From Hemiscyllium ocellatum (Eukaryota), in contig NC_083418.1 in the NCBI RefSeq assembly GCF_020745735.1, forward strand, positions 62,203,776 to 62,267,775: DNA of 64,000 nucleotides, written 5' to 3'. The translations under genes and the position numbers were made by a program. A model generated the notes under the pieces. The model made no database searches. It saw only the letters and a program-made list of their open reading frames with translations, and was not told where the DNA came from. Shown here in pieces: positions 1,392 through 63,228 of this stretch (the stretch's first letter is position 1; each line of letters starts with the position of its first letter).

Positions 1392-4300
1392 ATGGAAATG
1401 AAGATGCCTCTACGACTGTTACCCGATGACTTCTTATATGCAGAAACCAGGCCAACCAAAAATACCCAGAAGGAAGTCATAGTTTCAATGGAAAAGCTTT
1501 ATGAGACAGAGACGGTTACACCAGTTCATGGCCTACTGCGGCATTCCCCATTACCACAGAGCAAACCAGTGGGAACTATGCCATTAGAAACACTGCCTTT
1601 GGACAAAAAAACTTTTGAAGATAAGGCCCTGGAACAAATGCTTTTAGAATGCGACCCATCAAAAAACAAGTCCTGTGACTTTAGCCAAATAAAAGCAAAA
1701 TCTTTGGAAGAGCATATATTGCGATTGCAAAATCTCTGTCGCATTTGTGGAGTTGCCTTTAACACCAACTGTTATGATATGAAATACCCAGTAAATGGTC
1801 CTGTTGATGATGTCACCCAAGAGGTGCTCAAGAAAATGGGACATGGCGAGTGTTTTTGGCCAGAACTCATCCGTAACACATTTAGGATCGATGTCAAGAC
1901 AGATACAGAAGCCAGATACCCCACTCACTTCTGCTATAACTGTTGGCGTATTGTGATTCAGACAATTAACAATACAACGAATGAAGATGCATTCTTTCCG
2001 ATCAGTACAATCATTGAGTGGAAACCACATTCCAATCTTTGCAGCATTTGCAACTTTTTGAGTGGGCCCCGCAAACGAAAAGGTCTGAAACGAAGTCCAC
2101 CAGTCACAAAGAAGCCCAAAGTCACAACTGATGCTCCAGTCAGACCAAGAGTCATTAAAAGAAAAGATCAGGTGACTAGCACAAGTTTGTTATTGGCCAG
2201 AAAGATTATCAACTGCAAGAAGTTTCATCTAACTTCAAATCTCCTTGTGCTTGATTATCCCAATAATTTTATCCAGTCCGTGTCATGTCAGGTTTGTGAG
2301 CACTTACTTGCTGACCCTGTGCAATCACCTTGCAAGCACCTGTTCTGCAGAACGTGTATCCTCAAATGCATTGCTGTCCTCGGCAAGTTTTGCCCAGTTT
2401 GTAGATTTCCTTGTGCTCCCAAAGAGCTCTTAAGCCCTGTTAAATCATTCATAAATGTTCTTAATTCACTTGTACTCAAATGTCCAGCAACAGATTGTGA
2501 AATGGAGGTGAGACTCGGTGAATATTCGAATCATGCTCAAAACCATAAAGAAATAAGAATGAAGCACGCTTACTCACCAGTGAACAAGGGAGGTCGTCCA
2601 AGACTACATTTGCTTTCTCTCACCCGAAGAGCTCAAAAGCATCGTCTGAGAAATCTGAAACTTCAGGTGAAGGCTTTCGCAGACAAAGAGGAAGATGGTG
2701 ATGTAAAGTCCGTTTGCCTGACTCTGTTACTTCTGGCACTCAGAGCTGGCAATGAGCACAGGCAAGCAGATGAGCTGGAAGCGGTAATGCAGGGGAAAGG
2801 ATCCGAACTGAAGCCAGCAGTCTGCCTTGCCATTAGAGTGAACACTTTTCTGAGTTGCAGTCAGTATCATAAAATGTACAGGACAGTCAAAGCAACAACT
2901 GGGAAGCAGATCTTCCAGCCGTTGCATGCTCTTCGAAATGCAGAAAAAATACTGTTGCCAGGTTATTATTCATTTGAGTGGCAGCCCCCTCTAGCAAATG
3001 TCTCGACAAACACTGAAGTGGGAATTATAGATGGTCTGAGTGGATGGACACAGTGTATCGATGATTATCCAATGGAAACCATTTCAAGACGGTTTAGGTA
3101 TGATGTGGCACTTGCTGCAGCTGTGAAGGAGCTCGAGGATGATATTCTAGAAGGTTTAAAACGCCATAGCGTAGACGAGTTTGTGAGTGGACCGTTTACT
3201 GTTGTAATCAAGGAGTCTTGTGATGGAATGGGCGATGTCAGCGAGAAACACGGATGCGGTCCTCCTGTTCCAGAAAAGGCAGTGAGGTTTTCCATTACAA
3301 TCATGAGCATAAGTGTGATGAATAACAACGATGAGAAAGTGGTCATTTTTGAGGAGTTGAAGCCTAATTCTGAGCTGTGCTGCCGACCACTTTCCCTGAT
3401 GTTGGCGGACGAATCTGACCACGAAACGTTGACAGCGATCCTGGGCCCAGTAATCGCTGAGCGAGAAGCTATGAAGACTAGCGATTTGATCCTTGAGATT
3501 GGGGATTTGCACAGATCCTTCCGGTTTATCTTCAGGGGCACAGGGTATGATGAGAAGCTTGTTCGGGAAATGGAAGGCCTCGAAGCCTCGGGCTCAATGT
3601 TCGTCTGTACGCTGTGCGATTCCACACGATATGAGGCTTCCCAGAACCTGGTTTTTCATTCCATAACAAGGAGCCACGAAGAGAACTTGATGCGCTATGA
3701 GATTTGGCGCTCCAACCCGTACTGCGAAACCGCGGAGGAGTTGCGTGACCGGGTGAAGGGGGTTTCAGCAAAGCCCTTCATCGAAACTCAGCCGTCCATT
3801 GATGCCTTGCACTGCGACATTGGAAATGCCACTGAGTTCTACAAGCTCTTCCAGGACGAGATCGGGGAGCTGTACAAAAATCCAAATACCTCCAAGGAGG
3901 AGAGGAAGCGCTGGCAAGCGATGCTTGACAAGCACTTAAGGAAGAAGATGAACCTGAAGCCTGTCATGAGGCTGAATGGAAATTTTGCACGGAAGCTAAT
4001 GACTAAAGAGACGGTCGACGCTGTGTGTGAACTGATTCCGTCTGAAGAAAGGCGACAAATCCTCAGGGAGCTCATGCATCTTTATCTTCAGATGAAACCA
4101 GTGTGGCGTTCCACGTTTCCAGCCAGGGAGTGTCCTGACCTTCTTTGTCAGTACAGCTACAATTCCCAGAGATTTGCAGAACTGCTTCATACAGAGTTCA
4201 AGCACAGATACGAAGGGAAAATCACCAACTACCTGCACAAAACACTGGCTCACGTCCCCGAGATCATTGAAAGAGATGGCTCTATAGGTGCTTGGGCGAG

Positions 4301-4538
4301 TGAAGGCAATGAATCAGGCAACAAACTCTTCCGGCGTTTCAGGAAAATGAATGCAAGGCAGTCCAAAAGCTATGAATTGGAAGACATTTTGAAGCATCAC
4401 TGGCTGTACACTTCAAAATATTTGCAACGGTTCATGGAAGTGCACAATACGTTAAAGGACATCAAGTGTGCAACTGTAGAACCTGAACTGATCAGTACAG
4501 AAGATACAATACCTAATGATAATTCATTTGATTTTTAA
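1392..4538 (+). CDS. RAG1: V(D)J recombination-activating protein 1, 1048 aa, single coding exon
   Basis: Contains LCRICG and HFCYNC N-terminal Zn motifs, a C3HC4 RING (CQVCEH...CKHLFCRTC...CPVC), ZFA, and the nonamer-binding GGRPR. Catalytic triad is D611 (ESCDGMGD), D720 (GTGYDEK) and E974 (SEGNESGNK), equivalent to mouse D600/D708/E962. Confidence 0.99.
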
Positions 4539-31773: not shown

Positions 31774-33333
31774 TCAATCAAATAGTCTCTTCAGAAAGCT
31801 TTTCTTCATTGGTGTCCTTTTCAGAGTGGCTGGCGATTTCTTACGTGGAGATTTAATTGGTGTGCGCTTTATCTGTTTCTTCTTTTGAGGTGTTTGAATT
31901 CCTCTATCAATGTAATGCTCATTGCAAAAATACTTTGTGTTTTCTTGGGAAAACTGAATCAGCTGCGATTCTGCAAGATTCATGCACTGGGCATGAACCC
32001 AGTGTCCATCATCACCTCCGCTAGAGCAAAAAATCATTGCAGGTTTATTTAATTCTGTGGAATAATAAGGCTCCCAGATATTGACGTTCATATTACACGT
32101 AGAGCTGCATTTAATCCAATAACCTTCCTCATCAGCATTATCTCGGTTCTCTGCATCATCAGAGCCATCGGCCTCCACTTCAAAGTTAAATTCTTCTGAA
32201 TCTTCAAAGGTGCTACATTCTTCTGGATCAGTGAAGGATTCCTGGCTGCAAGAAACGTGACTTTCTTCATCTAATTGCTCAAATTTCACAATATAGAAGA
32301 AGTATGCCTCGGCTGCATCTTGTTTACTTTCTCCAGGGATGCCGAGTAACACTATATTACTTTTCATGCTACTACCAAACCAGGTTTTGCTTGCTTTAAT
32401 ATCGCCGGTCCACGCTGGGGGCTCCTTTTCCAAAATCTGAACGTTGTCATTCTCCACTGTGATGGTGTTACAAATCATTCGCTTCTTGCTCTCCGACTCA
32501 TAGCCACCAACAATGATGAATTCATCTTTTCCTGCTTGGGTCACTATTGCACTCGACACAGAGATGCCACCTTGCAGTATTGTGCACTGGACACTTGGAG
32601 AAGTCCCAAATAAATCAACCTTCAGACAAAGTAACCTTTCAGGGCGAAGGTTCGTTTCAATGGAATGGCCACCTAGTATGTACACTCTGTCAATTTTTGC
32701 AATGGAGGTATGAAATGAAAACCCATCTTCTATTTCGGGAAGTATGTGGGATGTGCAATGGCCGGTGTTTATATCAATCAGAAAAACCTCTGGTAAACAA
32801 TCAACAACACTGTTCCAGTTTTCTGTGGTTCGTTGCCCTGGGGGCCGGAAGCATCTACCCCCAAACAAGACTAACAACATTTGACCCTTGTTTTGAACCA
32901 CATTGAGGCTGTGGCCATATCTTCCTCGGGGAACCTCTCCTTCAAGATGTTTTTCAATGCAACGAAGTGATGTTGTCTTGTTGCCAGTGCTACTGTGAAC
33001 CATCATTAAATAAAGTGAATTAGTCAAGTCATTATTTGGATCTCTCCCACCGTGAATGAAATATAAAGGGCTCTTGGATTCTGAGGGATCCGAGTAATGG
33101 GTTATTGCAGGACAGCGCAGTGGGGGAAGGTAGCATGAGTCAGGTGAAAATGAAACAGCTTTCAGTTTGAGATTATGACCTTTGAGATGAAGAAGAAAAA
33201 CTCCAGTGCTGCAGGATCTTTTTGGCCACCCTTTCTGACCAAAAAAGAAGACTTCACCATTTAAATTGAATAAAGAAAAGCCTGGGTAGATAAGTCCAGT
33301 TTTGCTACACTCTGAAACCATTTGCAGAGACAT
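31774..33333 (-). CDS. RAG2: V(D)J recombination-activating protein 2, 519 aa, single coding exon
   Basis: Starts MSLQMV at ATG 33333; the track's 33339 start is a GTG. Contains the Kelch-repeat core (FFFGQKGWPKRSCSTG, IHGGR, PRGRYGHS), an acidic hinge (about 32125-32282), a PHD finger (GYWIKC..C...AMIFC...GHWVHAQC...YFCNEH) and the C-terminus KKSFLKRLFD. Confidence 0.99.
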   Translation of the reverse strand: MSLQMVSECSKTGLIYPGFSLFNLNGEVFFFGQKGWPKRSCSTGVFLLHLKGHNLKLKAVSFSPDSCYLPPLRCPAITHYSDPSESKSPLYFIHGGRDPNNDLTNSLYLMMVHSSTGNKTTSLRCIEKHLEGEVPRGRYGHSLNVVQNKGQMLLVLFGGRCFRPPGQRTTENWNSVVDCLPEVFLIDINTGHCTSHILPEIEDGFSFHTSIAKIDRVYILGGHSIETNLRPERLLCLKVDLFGTSPSVQCTILQGGISVSSAIVTQAGKDEFIIVGGYESESKKRMICNTITVENDNVQILEKEPPAWTGDIKASKTWFGSSMKSNIVLLGIPGESKQDAAEAYFFYIVKFEQLDEESHVSCSQESFTDPEECSTFEDSEEFNFEVEADGSDDAENRDNADEEGYWIKCSSTCNMNVNIWEPYYSTELNKPAMIFCSSGGDDGHWVHAQCMNLAESQLIQFSQENTKYFCNEHYIDRGIQTPQKKKQIKRTPIKSPRKKSPATLKRTPMKKSFLKRLFD

Positions 33334-33358
33334 TGCCACAGTGAAAAGCTGACAGTAT

Positions 33359-33380
33359 CTATGGAAAGAAAAGAAATATA
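33359..33380 (-). other. Splice acceptor of the RAG2 coding exon
   Basis: The minus strand reads TATATTTCTTTTCTTTCCATAG|ATACTGTC. The exon begins at 33358, 25 nt before the ATG. Confidence 0.75.
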
Positions 33381-33828
33381 AACTGATGTTAGAATTAAAA
33401 ATTTATTACAAAATTGATTGTTATGGATTCTGATGATGCAGAACTAACCACTCTGCAGCTTTTAATAAGTGCAAAAATGCTGGTTTTCGCTGTAATTTGT
33501 GTGATAAATCAGCAATTAAGAAAGACCATCACTTTATATTTCAAAATTCAATTACCTTAGGTTATGAAATACTTTTACTTTATTAAGTAAGAAAAACATT
33601 GTACTGCATTGATTTTTATTCATCATGCACAAAGTGTAATTGCTTCCAACCTTATTACTGAAATTCGGTTTCAATAAAATCTTCATTCAGCAAACTTAGT
33701 TTCTTTCCAATTCCAGGTCAGGATATGAAACCTTCAAATACTCAAATCTTTTTATTATTGTTCTATCTTTGGAACATATGTCTGGAGGGACTGAGGTGGA
33801 ACAGTGTATGATTAAGACTTACAATATA

Positions 33829-34140
33829 TTAGAGTTACAGTTTGGAAATAGGCCTTTCAGCCCAATATGTCCACACTGACCCTCCGAAGAGTAACCCACC
33901 CAGACCCATTCCCCTGCCCTACATTTATCACTGAATAATGCACCTAACACTATGGGCAATTTAGCACGGCCAATTTACCTAACCTGCACACCTTTTGGAT
34001 TGTGGGAGGAAACCAGAGCGCCCAGAGGAAACCCATGCAGACAAGGGGAGAATGTGTAAACTCCACACAGTCACCTGAGGCTGGAATCGAACCTGGATCC
34101 CGAGTGCTGTGAGGCAACAGTGCTAACCACTGAGCCACCC
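33829..34140 (-). mobile_element. HE1-type SINE
   Basis: The minus strand reads GGGTGGCTCAGTGGTTAGCACTG...GGTTCGATTCC. The body matches 43-363. Confidence 0.85.
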
Positions 34141-35671
34141 CAAATGGAAACTTGGGTTCTAAAGTAGACAAAAATGGGGTTTCATTTTTAGCCCTTTGAA
34201 GGTAGCTTTTTTTTTCGTAAGGGTTAGAAACCCATAGTTTTTTGCAGTGGATCAAATAGCTTTGCTAATAAATCATAAGACTTAAGCTGAATGATTAGAT
34301 AAGTTTCCGGGTGAGATATTTTCTGAAGCGTTTGGTGAATTCAGGTTTTAGAATCTACAGAAAGAGGGGCCAGAAGCAGTTTGTTTGCAAGAAATGCAGT
34401 CTCAGAGTAGTCAAAGTCAGACTAAAGTTAGTGTGTTAACCATATCGTGTATCTTGAGGGGAGATGAAGAGAATCATATTTGGTGAATGTGCAGAAAAAG
34501 AAATGCACGTGCCTTTGGCAGTTGAAAGAGAAATCATAGAGTGAAGTTAGAACTGATGTTGAGTATCTGTAAGGAATATTACTGGGAGAAAATGAATGAA
34601 TATTAATGATACTTCACTGGTGTTGAATATCTGTAAGGAATATTATTGGGAGAAAATAAATGAATATTTGTTATTGTTGTTTGTGATAAGGTCTCTAAAA
34701 TTGTCTTTTCTTTATCTTTGACCAACAATCAAATATTGTTATGTTAAAATTACATTGGCAATCTTGTGTGATTATGTTCAGTGAATGATTGCCACAGGAA
34801 TCAAATTGCAAAGGTAAAACTTATGGTCTATCAAGCTAAGTTTCACTTCCTGTCTGACCTGTCTAATACAACCATCAGCTAGGATCATAACAGGCACTAG
34901 AATTGAAAAGGTTACATAAATTGTGTTTGGGCCATGTTATTCGGAATCCTGAATGCATTTATGGGATATCAGTTAGAGACTAGGACCTAGAAATTGGCCT
35001 ATGGAGACAGGACAGAGGAAAATGGCTACAGGAAAGAATCACCATGGTAGATAAGGTCGGAATGCTGGAGATCCTTTGCCACATTTGCCCACATGGTATT
35101 GAATCCTGGGGAATTCCACTGCAACATGAAAACAGCCTTTCACTGCATCACTCTGCTTTTGTATCCATGCTGATATTGCCCTGTTTATACCCACTGGACT
35201 TCAATTTTGTGCATTGTTGTCCTTCATCAGACACCTTTTGGAAATTCATATACATATCGACAAATTTTTTTTTCATTCAGTCTGTCATCTCCACTTCATC
35301 AAGACCTCAATTCTGTTAGTCAATAAGGATTTCTCCTTCATGATTCTCTGCCAGCTCCCCTTTAATTGATCTTCACTTATCTAAGATGCTGTTATTTTTA
35401 CTTGTGGATTTTGTTTTTAAATGCTTCTCTGTTGCTGATATTAAACTGACTGCCAGGTTAATCCTTTCTCTCATTTTGGAAAGTGGGTTGTGATGCTTGG
35501 AGTCCTCCATCCTTTGGTGACAGCCATTTATCAAAAGAGGATCTGGTTTTCCTTAACTACTTTGTTTGTATCATTCTCAAAAATCTCATCAGGTCTTTCC
35601 CATTTAGTATTTATTCAATGCTATTTTTCAAATTGTTTTCATGACCTTGGCATGCAATGGATTCCAAATTC

Positions 35672-35932
35672 CAGGATTTTAGGAGGAAGGTACAAAGGAG
35701 ACGTCAGAGGTAGGTTCTTTACGCATAGAGTTGTTAATCCATGGAATCCTTTGACATTCTGTGGTGGTGGAAGCAGAGTCATTGGGAATATTTAAGTGAC
35801 AGCTGGACATGCACATGGATAGCAGTGAGTTGAGGGGTGCGGAGGTTAATTTATTACATTTTACATTAGGATTAAACCTTGGCACGACATCGTGGGCCAA
35901 AGAGCCTGTACTTTTCTATGTTCAATGTTCAA
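35672..35932 (+). mobile_element. CR1-type LINE 3' end (same subfamily as 12750-13011)
   Basis: GGAGGAAGGTACAAAGGAGACGTCAGAGGTAGGTTCTTTAC...ACATCGTGGGCCAAAGAGCCTGTAC. Confidence 0.75.
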
Positions 35933-36104
35933 TATTATCTCCTTACATAAACAACGATTCCTCATATTATCACCAAGTTTCGAATTATCATAAATCTACA
36001 CTTTCTGGCCCTTCTGAGACTTTTGCATCAGTAATGGCATGTATTTTGCAATGAGTATTTAGGTCTATGTGTAAGAGTTGTATGTTAGTATTAAATATGC
36101 ACAA

Positions 36105-38366
36105 TATAGAGGGAACAGAGGGGTCCAGTGACCATAACTCTATTAGTTTTAAAATAGTGATGGAAAAGGATAGGCCAGACCTAAAAGTTGAAGTTCAAAA
36201 TTGGACGAAGGCTAATTTTGACAGTATGAGGCAAGAGCTTTCAAAAGCTGGCTGGGGGTAGATATTCACAGGTAAAGGGGTGGCTGGAAAATGGGAAGCC
36301 TTCAGAAATGAGATAATGAGAGTCCAGAGACAGTGTATTCCTGTCAGGTGAAAGGAAAGGCAGGTAGGTGCTGGATGAACGAAAGAAGTTGAGGGTTTGG
36401 TTCAGAAAAAGAAGGAAGCATATGTCAGGTATAGACAGGATAGATTGAATGAATCCTGAGAAACGTATAAAGGCTGTGGGGGTATACTTAAGAGAGAAAT
36501 CAGGAGGGCACAAAGGGGACATGAGATAGTTTTGGTAAATAGAGTTAAGGAGAATCCAAAGATTTTTTTTACAAATACATTAAGGACAAAGGGTAACTAG
36601 GGAGAGAATAGGGCCCTCAAAGGTCAGCAAGGAAGCCTTTTTGTGGAGCCACAGCATTAGGAGAGATACTAAATGACTATTTTGCATCAGTATTTACTGT
36701 GGAAAAGGACATGGAAGATATAGAATGTAGGGAAATAGATGGTGACATCCTGAAAAATGTTCATATTACAGAGGAGAAAGTGCTGGATGTCTTGAAACAC
36801 ATAAAAGTGGATAAATACTCAGGACCTGAACAGGTATACCCAAAAACTCTGTGGGAAGCTAGGGAAGTGATTACTGGGCCTCTTGCTGAGATATTTGTAC
36901 CATCAATAATCACAGGTGAGGTGCCGGAAGACTGGAGGTTGGTTAACATGGTTAACACTGTTTAAGAAAAGTGGTAAGGACAAGGCAGGGAACTATAGAA
37001 CACTGAACCTGACATCAGCAGTGGGCAATTTGTTGGAGAGAATCCTGAGGGACAGGATGTAAGTGTATTTGGAAAGGCAAGGAATAATTAGGGATAGTCA
37101 ACATGGCTTTATGCATGGGAAGTCATGTCTCACAAACTTGACTGAGTTATTTGAAGAAGTAACAAAGAGGATTGATGAGGGCAGAGCAGTAGATGTGATC
37201 TATATGGATTTCAGTAAGGTGTTTGACAAGGTTTGCATGGGAGACTGGTTAGCAAGGTTAGGTCTCATGGAGTACAGGGAGAACTAGCTATTTGGATACA
37301 GAACTGGCTGAAAAGTAGAAGACAGAGGGTGGTGGTGGAGACTGGAGGCCTGTGACTGGTGGAGTGCCACAAGGATCAGTGCTGGGTCCTCTGCTTTTCA
37401 TCATTTATATAAATGATTTGTATGTGAGCATAAGAGGTATGGTTAATAAGTTTGAAGATGGCACTGAAATTGGAGGTGTAATGGACAGCAAATAAGGTTG
37501 CCTAAGATTACAACAGGATCTTGATCAGATGGGCCAATGGGCTGAGAAGTGGAAGATGGTGTTTAATTCAGATAAATGCGAGGTGCTGCACTTTTCGAAA
37601 GCAAATCTTAGCAGGACTTAAACATTTGATGGTAAGGTCCTAGGGAGTGTGCTGAACTAAGAGACCTTGGAGTGCAGGTTCATAGCTCCTTGAAAGTGGA
37701 GTCACAGGTAGATAGGATTGTGAAGAAGGCGTTTGGTATGCTTTCCTTTATTGGTCAGAATATTGTGTACAGGGGTTGGGAGGTCATATTGCGGCTATAC
37801 AGGGCATTGGTTGAGCCACTGTTGGGAATATTGCATGCAATTCTGGTCTCCTTCCTATTGGAAAGATGTTGTGAAACTTGAAAGGGTTCAGAAAAGATTT
37901 ACAAGAATGTTGCCAGGGTTGGAGGATTTGAACTATAGGGAGAGGTTAAATAGGCTGGCGCTGTTTTCCCTGGAGTGTCGGAGGCTGAGGGGTGACCTTA
38001 TAGAGGTTTATAAAATCGTGATGGCCATGGATAGGATAACTAGACAAAGTCTTTACCCAGATGAGGGGAAGTCCAGAACTAGAGGGCATAGGTTTAGGGT
38101 GAGAGGGGAAAGATATAAAAGAGACCTAAAAGGCCACATTTTCACACAGAGGGTGGTACGTGTATGGAATGAGCTGCCAAAGGAAGTGGTGGAGGGTAGT
38201 ACAATTGCAACATTTAAAAGGCATCTGGATGGGTATATGAATAATAAGTATTTGGAGGGATATGGGCCAGGTGCTGGCAGATGGGACGAGATTGGGTTAG
38301 GATAGCTGGTCGGCATGGACCAGTTAGACCGAAGGGTCTGTTTCCATGCTGTATATCTCTATGACT
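36105..38366 (+). mobile_element. CR1-type LINE, about 2.3 kb 5'-truncated copy with a disrupted RT
   Basis: ORF pieces read SQHGFMHGKSCLTNL...VDVIYMDFSKVFDKV and QFWSPSYWKDVVKLERVQKRFTRMLPGL, and the copy ends in a CTCTATGACT tail. Confidence 0.9.
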
Positions 38367-38850
38367 TTAAAGGTTTGCTCCTGCTCTTAGATCGTATATA
38401 GCAGAAGCTGGGTCTTTGTTCAAGATTGATTTGGATAGACTTTTCATAGAGAAGGGACTCAAAGGTATTAAATACAGATATAAAATAAACCTGAGACCAC
38501 AACCATGTGAGCCATGACATTGTTGAAGGATGGAACAGGCCTGAACGTTGAAATTAGCTCCCACCCCCCCCAAAACTAGTAAAACTTAAAAATGATCCAT
38601 ACTGCTCCAATTGCTTTGTATATTTTCGAACAATGCTCCAATATGACTTAGTACGTTAACTTCTATGTCTTTCTTTTTAAAACACTCTTTCTATTGGACT
38701 GCTCCTGTTTCCAACCTCATATTCCAAGCTATTTTGCTGACTGTGCGCTAAAATATTGTAATATTAGTGTGATCAACTATTTGGGAGCGCTGCATCATCT
38801 GATTGTTCAATATTCACCGAAATCTTAATCTCACACCCTCCTCTTGATTC

Positions 38851-39010
38851 CGGAATCAATATTCAGAGGCTCTATTTCCTCGGGGGTGTCATGTCCAGTG
38901 GGACCGGCCGACAGGATTTGTGGGATCTGTAGTTCACATTACGCCAACTAAGACTACATGTCCCAGCATTCCCCGTCCCTTCGACGTTGCTTGGCGACAT
39001 GGGCAAACAG
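38851..39010 (+). promoter_or_regulatory. Candidate bidirectional IFTAP/NWC promoter and non-coding exon 1
   Basis: 10 CpG in 38851-39034. Divergent ZNF143/SBS motifs lie at 38921-38933 (- strand ACTACAGATCCCA) and 38953-38971 (+ strand ACTACATGTCCCAGCATTC). An RFX X-box lies at 38986-38998 and a CAG|GTAAG donor at 39010/39011. Confidence 0.75.
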
Positions 39011-39182
39011 GTAAGAGCCTTGGAAAATGCTGCGAAACCCACTGAAATTATAACAACAAGCTGCATCTAACAACTGCCTGAATCCTCCTCATGAATAAAC
39101 AACACTCAATACAAATGGTTGTAGTCATGGTGGGGGAGATCATCCACAGTGAGGAGTGGAGGAGCCTGTCTACATTGTATCT

Positions 39183-40845
39183 GTGGGTATTGGGGGGAAG
39201 GGGAGTAGCATTGGGGGAGGGGGTGTGGGTATTGGGGGAGGGGGGAGTGGGGTTAGGTGGGTGGTGTGGGTATTGGGGGAGGGGGGAGTGGGGTTAGGTG
39301 GGTGGTGTGGGTATTGGGGGAGGGGGGAGTGGGGTTACGTGGGTGGTGTGGGTATAGGGGAGGGGGAGTGGTGTTAGGTGGGTGGTGTGGGTATTAGGGT
39401 GAGGGGGTATGGGGTTAAGTGGGTGGTGTGGGCATTGGGGGAGGGGGGAGTGGGGTTAGGTGGGTGGTGTGGGTATTGGGGGAAGGAGAGTGGGGTTACG
39501 TGGGTGGTGTGGGTTTTTGGGGTGAGGAGATGTGTTGTTGGGTGGTTGGGGTGAGTGGGTGTGGGGTTAGGTGGATGGTGTGGGCATTGGGGGAGGGGGG
39601 AGGGGGGAGTGGGGTTAGGTGGATGGTGTGGGCATTGGGGGAGGGGGGAGTGGGGTTAGGTGGATGGTGTGGGCATTGGGGGAGGGGGGAGTGGGGTTAG
39701 GTGGATGGTGTGGGCATTGGGGGAGGGGGGAGTGGGGTTAGGTGGGTATTGGGGGGAGGGGAGTGGGATTAGGTGGATGTGTGGGTATTGGGGGGAGGGG
39801 AGTGGGATTAGGTGGATGTGTGGGTATTGGTGGGAGCGGTAGTGGGGTTAGGTGGGTGGTGTGGGTATTAGGCTGAGGGGGAGTGGGGTTACTTGTTGGT
39901 ATGTGTTTTTGGGGTGAGGGGGTGTGGTGTTAGGTGCGTGGTGTGGGTATTGGGGGAGGGGGGAGTGTGGTTAGGTGGGTGGTGTGGGTATTGGGGTGAG
40001 GGGGTTATGCGGTTAGGTGGGTGGTGTTGGGTTTTGGGGTGAGTGGGTGTGTGGTTAGGTGGGTGGTATGTGTTCTGGGGTGAGGGGGTGTGGTGTTGGG
40101 TGGTGTGGGTATTGGGGTGAGGGGGTGTGGGGTTAGGTGGGTGGTGTGGGTATTGGGGTGAGGGGGTGTGGGGTTAGGTGGGTGGTGTGGGTATTGGGGT
40201 GAGGGGGTGTGGGGTTAGGTGGGTGGTGTGGGTATTGGGGAGGGGGAGTGGGGTTAGGTGAGTGGTGTGGGTATTTGGGTGATGGGGTGTGGGTTTAGGT
40301 GGGTAGTGTAGGTATTGGGGTGAGGGGTGTGGGGTTAGCTGGGTGGTTTGGGGTTTTGGGGTGAGGTGTGTGCGGTTAAGTCAGTGGTGTGGGGTTTTGG
40401 GTTGTGGGGGTGTGGGGTTAGGTGGTTGGTATGGGTATTGGGGGAGGGGGTTTGGGGTCAGGTGGATGGTGTGGGTATTGGGGCAGGGGATATGGGGTTA
40501 GGTGGGTGTTGTGTGTATTGGGGAGGGGGAGTGGGGTAAGGTGGGTGGTGTGAGGTTTTGGGGGGAGGGAGTGTGCGGTTAGGTGGGTGTTGTGGAGTTA
40601 GGTGGGTGGTGTAGGGTTTTGGGGGGAAGGGGGTGTGGGGTTAGGTGGGTGATATGGGTATTGGGGCAGGGGATGTGGGGTTCGGTGGTTGGTGTGGGTA
40701 TTGGGGCAGAGGATATGGGGTTAGGTGGGTGTTGTGGGTATTGGGGAGGGGGGAGTGGGGTAAGTTGGATGGTGTGGGGTTAGGTGGTTGGTGTGGGTAT
40801 TGGGGCAGGGGGTGTGTGGTTAGGTGGGTGGTGTGGGTATTAGGA
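39183..40845. repeat. G-rich tandem array with a ~40-41 bp unit, about 40 diverged copies
   Basis: The unit is approximately GGGGTTAGGTGGGTGGTGTGGGTATTGGGGGAGGGGGGAGT, with extreme G skew on the + strand. Confidence 0.95.
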
Positions 40846-41429
40846 TCAGGGATTGTGAGGGGCATAAGATGTGAGGGTTAGGGGAGGGCATGTGGTGGTT
40901 CAAAGGAGCTTCGGATGGGAGCGGGTGAGGGTTGGAGGTGAGGGTGTGATATCTCTACACTGGGGAAATGGGGATGGTTTGTCCACACTATCTGCATGTG
41001 TGTTTATGTATAAATGGTCTCTGTGTAGAAATGGTGGTGTGGTCTGTCTACAGTATTGGGGGGAATATCAGTCCACTAGTGAGCTTTAAATGGTCACTAT
41101 CATCTAGGAATCACAGGAGAATTATGATATATACTGAACAGAAGGAAGTTCTATAGAAATTGTGCCTGTTGTGCTTTTCTGAAAGTTCTGTTCAGTTTCA
41201 GTTCTTGGTTGTTTATGATTTTATTTCTTTCAACACTCCAACAAACTATATTGCAGATTAATTTCCTGGGAGAGCAGAAGGCTATGAAAAGAAAGGCAAT
41301 CCTAAATTGTCTTACAGTGACATTAAGGATGAATTGATAACAAGAGAAAGAGTCCGTTAACGACCACAGTAGTATTTTTGTATGTTGTCCCAGAGGGTGT
41401 TGTGAATAGATACATTGTGTCAGTGAGAG

Positions 41430-42167
41430 GGTCAACATGAAATCATGGAGAAGCTCTGTGATACAATTAAATGAATCAACACAGACAGAGAGGAGGTCCT
41501 TAGTGATCTGGCAGGCTGAAAAGAAGATAAATCTCTGGAACTAAATGAACTATTTCTGAGTTTATTGAGTGAGGCAACAGTAGAAGTAGCACTGATGTTT
41601 GCAAACGTTTTCAAATCGTCTCTGGCAACAGGAGAGGTGCTGGAGGACTGAAGAACTGACGGTGTGGTACTGTTCTTCAGGAAGGAGCAAGGGATCAACT
41701 AGGAAACTACAGGCTAATTGGACTAACATTGCTGGTGGGGAAATTATTGGAAACAATACTGAGGATGTTGCTGGAAAAGCTGGGACTTTTTTCCCTGTAG
41801 CATAGGAAGTTGAGAATCAATTTGATAGAAGTTTATAAAATAGTGAGAGGTTATAGATAGAGTTAATGGTGGTTGACTTTTCCCTAGGTTGGGGATTTCA
41901 AGACTCGGGGACACGGTTTTAAAGTTAGACGTGAAAAGACACATGGCAATTTTTTTTTACACAGGGTGGTTCGCGTGTGGAATTAATGTCCTGAGAAAGT
42001 GGTGGAGATGGGTACGATTGCAATGTTTAAAAGACGTTTGGGTAGATACTTGAATAGGAAAGATTTGGAAGGATATGGGCCAGGAGCTGGCAGATGGGAT
42101 TATGTTTGGTTAGGACTGAATTGGATTGAATGGTCTATTTCTGTGCTGTATGATTCTATGACTCTCT
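41430..42167 (+). mobile_element. CR1-type LINE fragments with an internal deletion
   Basis: GGCAACAGGAGAGGTGCTGGAGGACTG followed by the 3' end GGAATTAATGTCCTGAGAAAGTGG...GATTCTATGACTCT. Confidence 0.7.
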
Positions 42168-56165: not shown

Positions 56166-57305
56166 AATGCACAATAATGTTCATTCAGTAACCAGATAGA
56201 ATAGCTGTACAATTGACAGTCAACATGATAAGTAGATAGTAAATAGTGCTCAGAATAAGTTCTAGAAAATATTATACTCTTGATTATAGAGAGGTCATGT
56301 GATGTAGTGGATGGCATTTCTGCCTCTAAGAAAGAACTTTGGATTCAAGTCCCACTTAGAATTCCTTGGTCATTAAATTCCTATGTGTCATAATGTGGCT
56401 GAATAAATTGAGGATCAAGCTGCAAATCCTTCTCATACATGCTAACAGCAGGTAGTAGCAGTGGGCAGGATTCCTGGTCTGCCATGTAATGGAAAGAAAG
56501 TTTAAGACCTTTACTATCACTGTCCAGAGCTCCAGGCTGCTTGTTGCCACAGCAACTCAGTCTCCCTGTGTGATATGTAACAGGCCAGTACCACTCTTGA
56601 TTATGAATTGTATAGACTTTATCAAAAGACACTAGACACAATTCTGGGTTTCTGATGGCAATGTTGTACGGCTGTTTTCAAAGACAAATCCAGAAGATAA
56701 ATAACATGCCTTCTTTCTTAGACAGATTCTCAAGACTGAAAATTACATTCTTTCATTTGGAATTGTGGCTTCTGAGATGACTAAATAGTCTAGTGCTGAA
56801 TTTGCATGCCCTGTCACAGATTTATAGGGGATCTTATGGTAAAATGGTATTGTCTCTGCCTCCAAGCAAGAAAATCTGTTTAAGTTCACAACGGATTGAT
56901 GAAAGTAACTATCCTACCACAGGTGGGGCAGGTGATGTTTAAAGTAATGGTTGGATGCTGAGGTTTTTCTACTTTCCTTTTACTGTTTTGCATCACTAGA
57001 TCACATGACCTCTTTATAATTAAGAGATGCTCAAGACGGTTAGCAGCTTTGTAGATGTGTCCTCTCCAATTTCGGAAGTTTTGGGGACGGATTCCCATGT
57101 GTTGATGGCGATATTGCATTTTTTCAGAGAAGCTTTCAGGTTGTCCTTTGAAGCATTTTCTCTTTCCTTCTAATAAGTGCTTGCCGTGGATAGCTATTAT
57201 TTGGAGGACTTGTGTGAGACATGTGATGTGGCAACAGTTGATTGACAGTACCTGGTACATGATGCTGGTGTTGTTGGCCTGTGACAGGGCAGTGATTTAG
57301 TAGTG

Positions 57306-62364: not shown

Positions 62365-63098
62365 ATTCAATTGGCAAAGATTTAACTGAGACTTTCAGTG
62401 CCAAGCAGGGAACAGGATCTCCTTTGTTTTGTCCACTTTACCAGGATCTCTAAGTGGCCTGTCTGGACCACTTAGAGCCAGATTAACTGTTTGAAAATGA
62501 TTCTTTCTAAAGCCAAAATACACCTCTCCTTTAATGTCAAAAATATCCAATTTCCTGACAAAAACTTATGATGCCCATGTATGCAATTTTTGTAGTCCAT
62601 CTTTCGTTATTCCATCACTGGGTGTGCTTTCGAACTCTCTGCAGACAGAATTCATGATGAACCATAAATTTTTATTTTCTTTTCTTTTGATTTAAAGTTT
62701 ATTTGTTATATTTCAGTTTTTTAAAAATAAATTTCATTTATATGTTACAATCTTTATTTCCCTGACTGTAAGATGATTAACAAATGAAGGGGAATCTGTG
62801 TGTTTAACTTCCTGGTGTACTGTCAGTGAAAATTCTTTAGTGGGATTTGCTGCTTAGCCTGTTAGTTGACAGAATTGTTGCTAGACAATGGAGAACTCCT
62901 TTGTTTATGGCAGATTAAAATTAATGTTGAAAGACGTGAAATACTTGTCACAGAGATCTGTAGATCTTTGTGGACTACTTTCTTAGAAATTAGTGATAAA
63001 TAAGCCCTGGCACCTCACCACTGACCACAAATCCATTTGTTTTATTGTAGCTAACTCTGTGCCTATTTTGTATTCTAGATGAAATACCTACATTAGAC

Positions 63099-63228
63099 AT
63101 GCCAGCAGTGTTGGGATCACAAATTATGGGGGAAGGAAGAACAGCCTTTGATGCTCTGGAAAAATTTTGCAGCAGTCATGAACAAACATATGCTGAATTC
63201 TTAGAATCATTTATGCACCTCAAAAAAG
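63099..63228 (+). CDS. IFTAP: First coding exon of intraflagellar transport-associated protein (C11orf74/NWC); the remaining exons lie beyond the window
   Basis: Acceptor TTTTGTATTCTAG| at 63078 and donor AAG|GTAAG at 63228/63229 (phase 1). Encodes MPAVLGSQIMGEGRTAFDALEKFCSSHEQTYAEFLESFMHLKK, matching the recalled human N-terminus [34 protein letters not shown]. Position and orientation next to RAG2 are the expected synteny. Confidence 0.85.

Follow-up and report, generated by a model that had tools for sequence, protein, structure and literature searches.

The presence of a site matching the RFX consensus (X-box) within the promoter between RAG2 and IFTAP of a shark raises the question of whether RFX factors act on this promoter and, if they do, whether their action reaches RAG2. 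The first-pass annotation of the sequence had proposed that such a site could be a route to RAG2 expression in ciliated or germ cells. To address this, we analysed a 64-kb window (the whole stretch of DNA under study) that comprises the RAG locus in an orectolobiform shark. IFTAP, also known as NWC or C11orf74 (B230118H07Rik/Nwc in mouse), is the third gene of this locus; it functions in ciliary transport and is arranged head to head with RAG2.

The promoter between RAG2 and IFTAP

The features of the window that matter for the question are the following:

1392-4538, plus strand: RAG1 coding exon, identified with Pfam and convergent with RAG2
31774-33358, minus strand: RAG2 coding exon, with the ATG at 33333-33331 and a Pfam-confirmed open reading frame at 31774-33339
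38910-38935, minus strand: RAG2-side ZNF143 site, inverted, with the core ACTACA-GA-TCCCA at 38921-38933
38951-38976, plus strand: IFTAP-side ZNF143/ZFP143 site (SBS), with the core ACTACA-TG-TCCCA at 38953-38965, compared with the consensus RRACTACANNTCCCRNNNNNCNNGCG from PMC3439442
38986-38998, no strand assigned: X-box-like imperfect palindrome GTTGCT-T-GGCGAC, which fits the consensus and whose strong half is conserved in seven species
38988-39010, plus strand: predicted short non-coding exon 1 of IFTAP, placed by analogy with the mouse transcription start and ending in a CAG/GTAAGA donor, with the intron from 39011
63079-63228, plus strand: first coding exon of IFTAP, in exon reading frame 3, encoding the N-terminal conserved domain (Pfam PF17722), with splice sites present

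RAG2 shares 97% identity with its counterpart in Chiloscyllium plagiosum. Its coding exon is preceded by a polypyrimidine tract and an AG acceptor (33360-33359), and the mRNA must therefore start in an exon further upstream. The coding exon of IFTAP matches PF17722 over profile positions 4-44 with a score of 40.3 bits (cut-off 29.3). The two genes are divergent, and between their coding exons lies a pair of inverted ZNF143 sites, both with perfect ACTACANNTCCCA cores. This is the arrangement published for the mouse NWC promoter, which lies in the Rag2 intron, works in both directions and requires a pair of inverted ZFP143 sites (Laszkiewicz 2012, PMC3439442). The X-box, which the first-pass annotation had placed in the IFTAP promoter, is located in the IFTAP (NWC) core promoter. 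Inverted pairs are also present in the RAG2-upstream loci of chimaera, skate, rodent and bat, while in gar and turtle only the IFTAP-side site is found at one mismatch or fewer.

The mouse sites span -10/-37 and -74/-100 relative to the start. If the shark start is placed in the same way, with the ZFP143 site ending at -10, it would fall near 38988, and the X-box would cover approximately -2 to +11, i.e., it is predicted to overlap the start. The ATG at 38999 was ruled out as the start of IFTAP: it does not share the reading frame of the coding exon, and the predicted exon 1 is therefore non-coding, as is exon 1 of mouse Nwc. Should transcription start upstream of it, this ATG would open a 9-codon upstream reading frame (38999-39010 and 63079-63096) that crosses the junction between exons 1 and 2 and stops before the IFTAP start codon.

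The distance between this promoter and the RAG2 ATG varies about 20-fold across species: 5.6 kb in the shark, 1.2 kb in the skate, 0.66 kb in the gopher, 0.3 kb in the chimaera and 0.27 kb in the bat. In mouse, 313 nt separate the NWC promoter from the RAG2 coding exon (PMC3439442). The open reading frames of the shark spacer (33359-38910) have no Pfam match, and no transposon open reading frame could be recognised among them; local BLAST with 34025-34073 masked found no long internal repeats in it. A search of 34100-42000 against Rfam gave no match. On the IFTAP side, a G-rich minisatellite (39182-40888; about 35 copies of a 41-nt unit) begins 170 nt past the exon-1 donor. It has a GC skew of about +0.8 to +0.9, with the G-runs on the IFTAP sense strand, and is of a sequence type prone to form G-quadruplexes that here adjoins a bidirectional promoter.

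The X-box in the window and its strong half in other jawed vertebrates

The plus strand reads GTTGCTTGGCGAC at 38986-38998, and the reverse complement, GTCGCC-A-AGCAAC, fits GTNRCC-N(0-3)-RGYAAC exactly, just as the first-pass annotation had it. That annotation had also put the site 11 bp from the right ZNF143 extension, which is near enough: it lies about 9-10 nt beyond the end of the 26-nt ZNF143 consensus and begins 33 nt after the start of the right-hand (IFTAP-side) ACTACA. The strong half, GTTGCT, is on the side towards the ZNF143 site, and the weaker half, GGCGAC (GTCGCC on the other strand), meets the degenerate consensus only. A forkhead-like GCAAACA directly behind the X-box was dropped because it is not conserved.

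With a 1-nt spacer (GTNRCC-N-RGYAAC), the site is the only match in the 64-kb window, for 0.16 expected. Allowing spacers of 0-3 nt brings the number of matches to two, and a first-order Markov simulation expects 0.51 per window, with a probability of 0.38 of at least one, so that the motif taken by itself is within chance. The chance of a consensus X-box at 60 nt or less from the ZNF143 pair is about 0.001. It is this adjacency, together with the conserved position described below, that makes the match convincing. The other match, GTTGCCACAGCAAC (56543-56556, 2-nt spacer), is situated within intron 1 of IFTAP, 6.5 kb upstream of the first coding exon, and is probably a chance occurrence. The 500 nt around it are unique in the window and have a CpG observed/expected ratio of 0.05.

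To compare the promoters of different species we used RAG2-anchored loci with 10-kb flanks, and the promoter could be located in the window and in six further species. MAFFT aligned only the ZNF143 sites across all seven, and we therefore compared offsets, defined as the distance of GTTGCY from the IFTAP-side ACTACA, scanning the first 120 nt downstream:

Shark (window): offset 33, GTTGCTTGGCGAC, full consensus
Callorhinchus (chimaera, locus L001): offset 32, GTTGCTAGGAGCC
Amblyraja (skate, L003): offset 37, GTTGCCAGGGCCAC, full consensus with a 2-nt spacer
Lepisosteus (gar, L002): offset 32, GTTGCTTGGAGAA
Chrysemys (turtle, L007): offset 35, GTTGCC only
Thomomys (rodent, L005): offset 59, GTTGCTCCWGGAGA
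Glossophaga (bat, L009): offset 54, GTTGCTCCWGGAGA

All seven located promoters have exactly one same-strand GTTGCY within the 120 nt, an outcome with a chance of 1-2% in each species. Offsets range over 32-37 nt in the five non-mammals and 54-59 nt in the two placentals. The sequence between the ZNF143 site and GTTGCY is not conserved across the seven species, and a single GTTGCY is kept nonetheless; the conserved unit is therefore one strong RFX-type half, usually followed by (W)GG. Even the following GG is missing in the turtle, and in chimaera, gar and mammals the second half reads GGAG(A/C), a poor fit to RGYAAC. Only the two elasmobranchs extend the conserved half-site into a full palindrome, with different spacers, while the other five keep the strong half alone. 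Of the conservation across orthologous promoters to which the first-pass annotation had looked, the strong half thus stood in 7/7 and the full consensus in shark and skate only. At the level of sequence, this comparison shows that the position and strand of GTTGCY have been kept since the split of chimaeras, sharks and bony vertebrates.

Rodent and bat share a second and better X-box in an aligned block, in both cases exactly 302 nt downstream of ACTACA on the IFTAP side (GTTGCCTAGCAAC and GTTGCCTGGAAAC, respectively; L005 8975-8987 and L009 9368-9380). The Thomomys copy fits perfectly, while the Glossophaga copy contains one mismatch. Weak matches to the mouse Nwc exon-1b primer follow about 350-400 nt further on, and from this position the second X-box may be part of the alternative Nwc promoter that is strong in testis (PMC3035778).

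In the 10 kb upstream of RAG2, three other loci, those of Xenopus laevis, Indicator (a bird) and Esox (a pike), have neither a ZNF143 pair nor an exon of IFTAP. The promoter was thus not located in them, and they are uninformative on the X-box either way. The Xenopus laevis locus (L004) does contain a consensus X-box, GTTGCCAGTAGCAAC at 3346-3360, which we set aside because it seems to belong to a dispersed repeat and not to a promoter. It is 6.6 kb upstream of RAG2, has no ZNF143 pair nearby and carries CCAATC on its plus-strand 3' side (ATTGG on the opposite strand).

RFX and other readings of the element

GTTGCY is the hallmark half-site of RFX factors. The reading that we favour, with a probability of roughly 0.6, is that the 13-mer is a true X-box of the RFX type, conserved since ancient times in the core promoter of IFTAP, through which RFX would boost IFTAP. 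ZNF143 would provide basal, bidirectional and ubiquitous activity, and an RFX dimer (RFX1/2/3) would dock at the start-proximal X-box mainly via its strong half, thereby raising IFTAP expression in ciliated cells, spermatocytes and round spermatids. Such a boost would account for the roughly tenfold higher expression of IFTAP in testis. If transcription towards RAG2 is affected at all, this would follow as a side effect of the shared opening of the promoter. As its strong half has held its place from chimaeras to mammals, the X-box is probably a real but ordinary control element.

Published observations on other X-boxes and on the NWC protein are consistent with an RFX site. The X-boxes of DYX1C1 (GTTGCTAGGGAAG) and KIAA0319 (GTCGCCGTGGTAAC), which bind RFX1/2 or work in reporter assays, are built in the same way with one strong half, and that of DYX1C1 is bound by RFX in gel-shift assays (PMC5024701). 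The NWC protein co-precipitates IFT-A proteins (IFT122 as bait in CiliaCarta). It is seen in spermatocytes and in round spermatids, stages that it shares with RFX2, whose expression falls in pachytene spermatocytes and early round spermatids; RFX2 sites are very near transcription starts. The second X-box of rodent and bat also speaks for an RFX site. Human C11orf74 has an expression-screen score of 4.63 in CiliaCarta, with high co-expression with ciliary genes.

It is possible, if rather unlikely, that the GTTGCY(W)GG element is functional without being an RFX site, and acts as a core-promoter or start-site element, as a site for a partner of ZNF143 or as an RNA signal in exon 1. Relative to the mouse-equivalent start, GTTGCY occupies -3 to +2 in the non-mammals and +19 to +24 in rodent and bat. 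It is thus probably transcribed, and a role at the start site or in the 5'UTR is conceivable. The poor second half in chimaera, gar and mammals also fits such a role, as does the outcome of two surveys: the human gene was not called by the strict X-box screens of CiliaCarta (RFX/FOXJ1 TFBS = 0), and B230118H07Rik/Nwc is absent from the expression and ChIP tables of the Rfx2-knockout mouse testis, which include Ift122, Ift57 and Ift172 (Kistler 2015).

Against a non-RFX element stand the full consensus palindromes of shark and skate, with their differing spacers, the one-strong-half form that the element shares with the RFX-binding X-box of DYX1C1, and the ciliary and testis-enriched character of IFTAP. 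The conserved half-site is itself the hallmark of RFX, and we know of no other factor whose motif fits GTTGCYWGG, which also counts against that alternative. For these sequences, a genuine RFX site is the likely identity of the shark 13-mer.

RAG2 transcription and comparison with known systems

The first-pass annotation had gone further and suggested that a ciliary-gene promoter active in both directions could leak RAG2 transcription into germ cells. On this reading, RFX bound at the promoter would drive transcription leftward as far as the RAG2 coding exon in germ cells or ciliated cells of the shark, which would provide a route to germline RAG2 and help to explain germline-joined V(D)J genes. 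We consider this improbable. The mouse NWC promoter, bidirectional and requiring ZFP143, yields RAG-2 transcripts in testis at levels 5-10 times below those in thymus (PMC3439442), so the core of the leakage inference is already published. The promoter architecture is conserved in the shark, where the good 3' splice site of RAG2 at 33360-33359 could be used by a leftward upstream exon, and candidate minus-strand GT donors occur at about 38836 and 38818. Against the leak, the promoter is 5.6 kb away from RAG2 in the shark but about 0.3 kb away in chimaera, bat and mouse. The shark X-box is on the IFTAP side, and the ZFP143 site of that side has little effect on transcription towards RAG-2 in mouse; moreover, the authors of the mouse study detected no RAG-2 protein in testis (PMC3439442). 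RAG1 would be needed as well. Sampled words of 38900-39060 were absent from the presumed-RNA runs of the source organism.

The NWC promoter has been proposed as a host element that sheltered and expressed the incoming RAG transposon, and Laszkiewicz et al. argued that jawed vertebrates have conserved its architecture and that this favoured survival of the transposon (PMC3439442). One could extend this proposal to a promoter that has combined ZNF143 and RFX since the gnathostome ancestor and provides a conserved route of RAG2 transcription in male germ cells, which we regard as less probable still than the leak in the shark. As RFX2 is the main regulator in spermatids, a host promoter beside the domesticated RAG transposon would then be boosted specifically in male germ cells. 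If this were true and RAG1 leaky too, it would offer a mechanism behind the germline-joined antigen-receptor genes that cartilaginous fishes carry; the link from a RAG2 leak to germline-joined V(D)J genes is speculation.

The weakest reading, a chance match without function, can point to the 0.5 consensus X-boxes expected per 64 kb and to the second one at 56543-56556, but the cross-species result makes it very unlikely, with the strong half fixed in position and strand in seven lineages amid unalignable flanks (joint chance far below 1e-6).

The favoured RFX-type X-box can be compared with two known systems. The shark promoter resembles that of mouse NWC (PMC3439442, PMC4157847) in its two inverted ZNF143 sites (published spacing of about 40-50 bp) and in the location of this pair between the RAG2 coding exon and a non-coding exon 1 of IFTAP, with the two genes divergent. 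In the mouse system, IFTAP expression is highest in testis and the promoter drives the RAG-2 transcripts found there. The shark differs from it in having 5.6 kb, and not 313 nt, between promoter and RAG2 coding exon. Relative to the shark, the two placentals of our comparison have GTTGCT about 20 nt farther from the ZNF143 site and a poorer second half. The papers of the Laszkiewicz group on the NWC promoter (2011; 2012, PMC3439442; 2014, PMC4157847) mention neither RFX nor an X-box, and ZFP143 and Ikaros are the only factors placed on this promoter in the work cited here. A literature search pairing C11orf74, B230118H07Rik or IFTAP with RFX or X-box returned nothing relevant.

As an X-box, the shark site resembles those of DYX1C1/DNAAF4, DCDC2 and KIAA0319 (PMC5024701) and the RFX2 targets of spermatids (PMC4498915): it is an imperfect palindrome of 13-14 nt at a cilium-related gene, at a start that is predicted here. 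With DYX1C1 it shares the strong half GTTGCT and a degenerate partner, and its half GTCGCC also occurs in KIAA0319. Unlike the RFX ciliary X-boxes, it stands beside ZNF143 sites in a bidirectional promoter of ubiquitous activity, and IFTAP is outside both the CiliaCarta set of RFX/FOXJ1 sites and the Rfx2-knockout tables. If the RFX-type element is real, a gene long "of unknown function" would join the ciliary regulon through its cis-regulation.

The EF-C/MDBP (RFX1) sites in the enhancers of polyomavirus and hepatitis B virus are, like the shark site, 13-nt palindromes with a 1-nt spacer that begin with GTTGCT. They are viral enhancer sites with two good halves, whereas the shark site belongs to a cellular promoter and has one weaker half. 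Overall, a putative RFX-type site beside the ZNF143 pair adds modestly to the published model of this promoter and is not a new mechanism.
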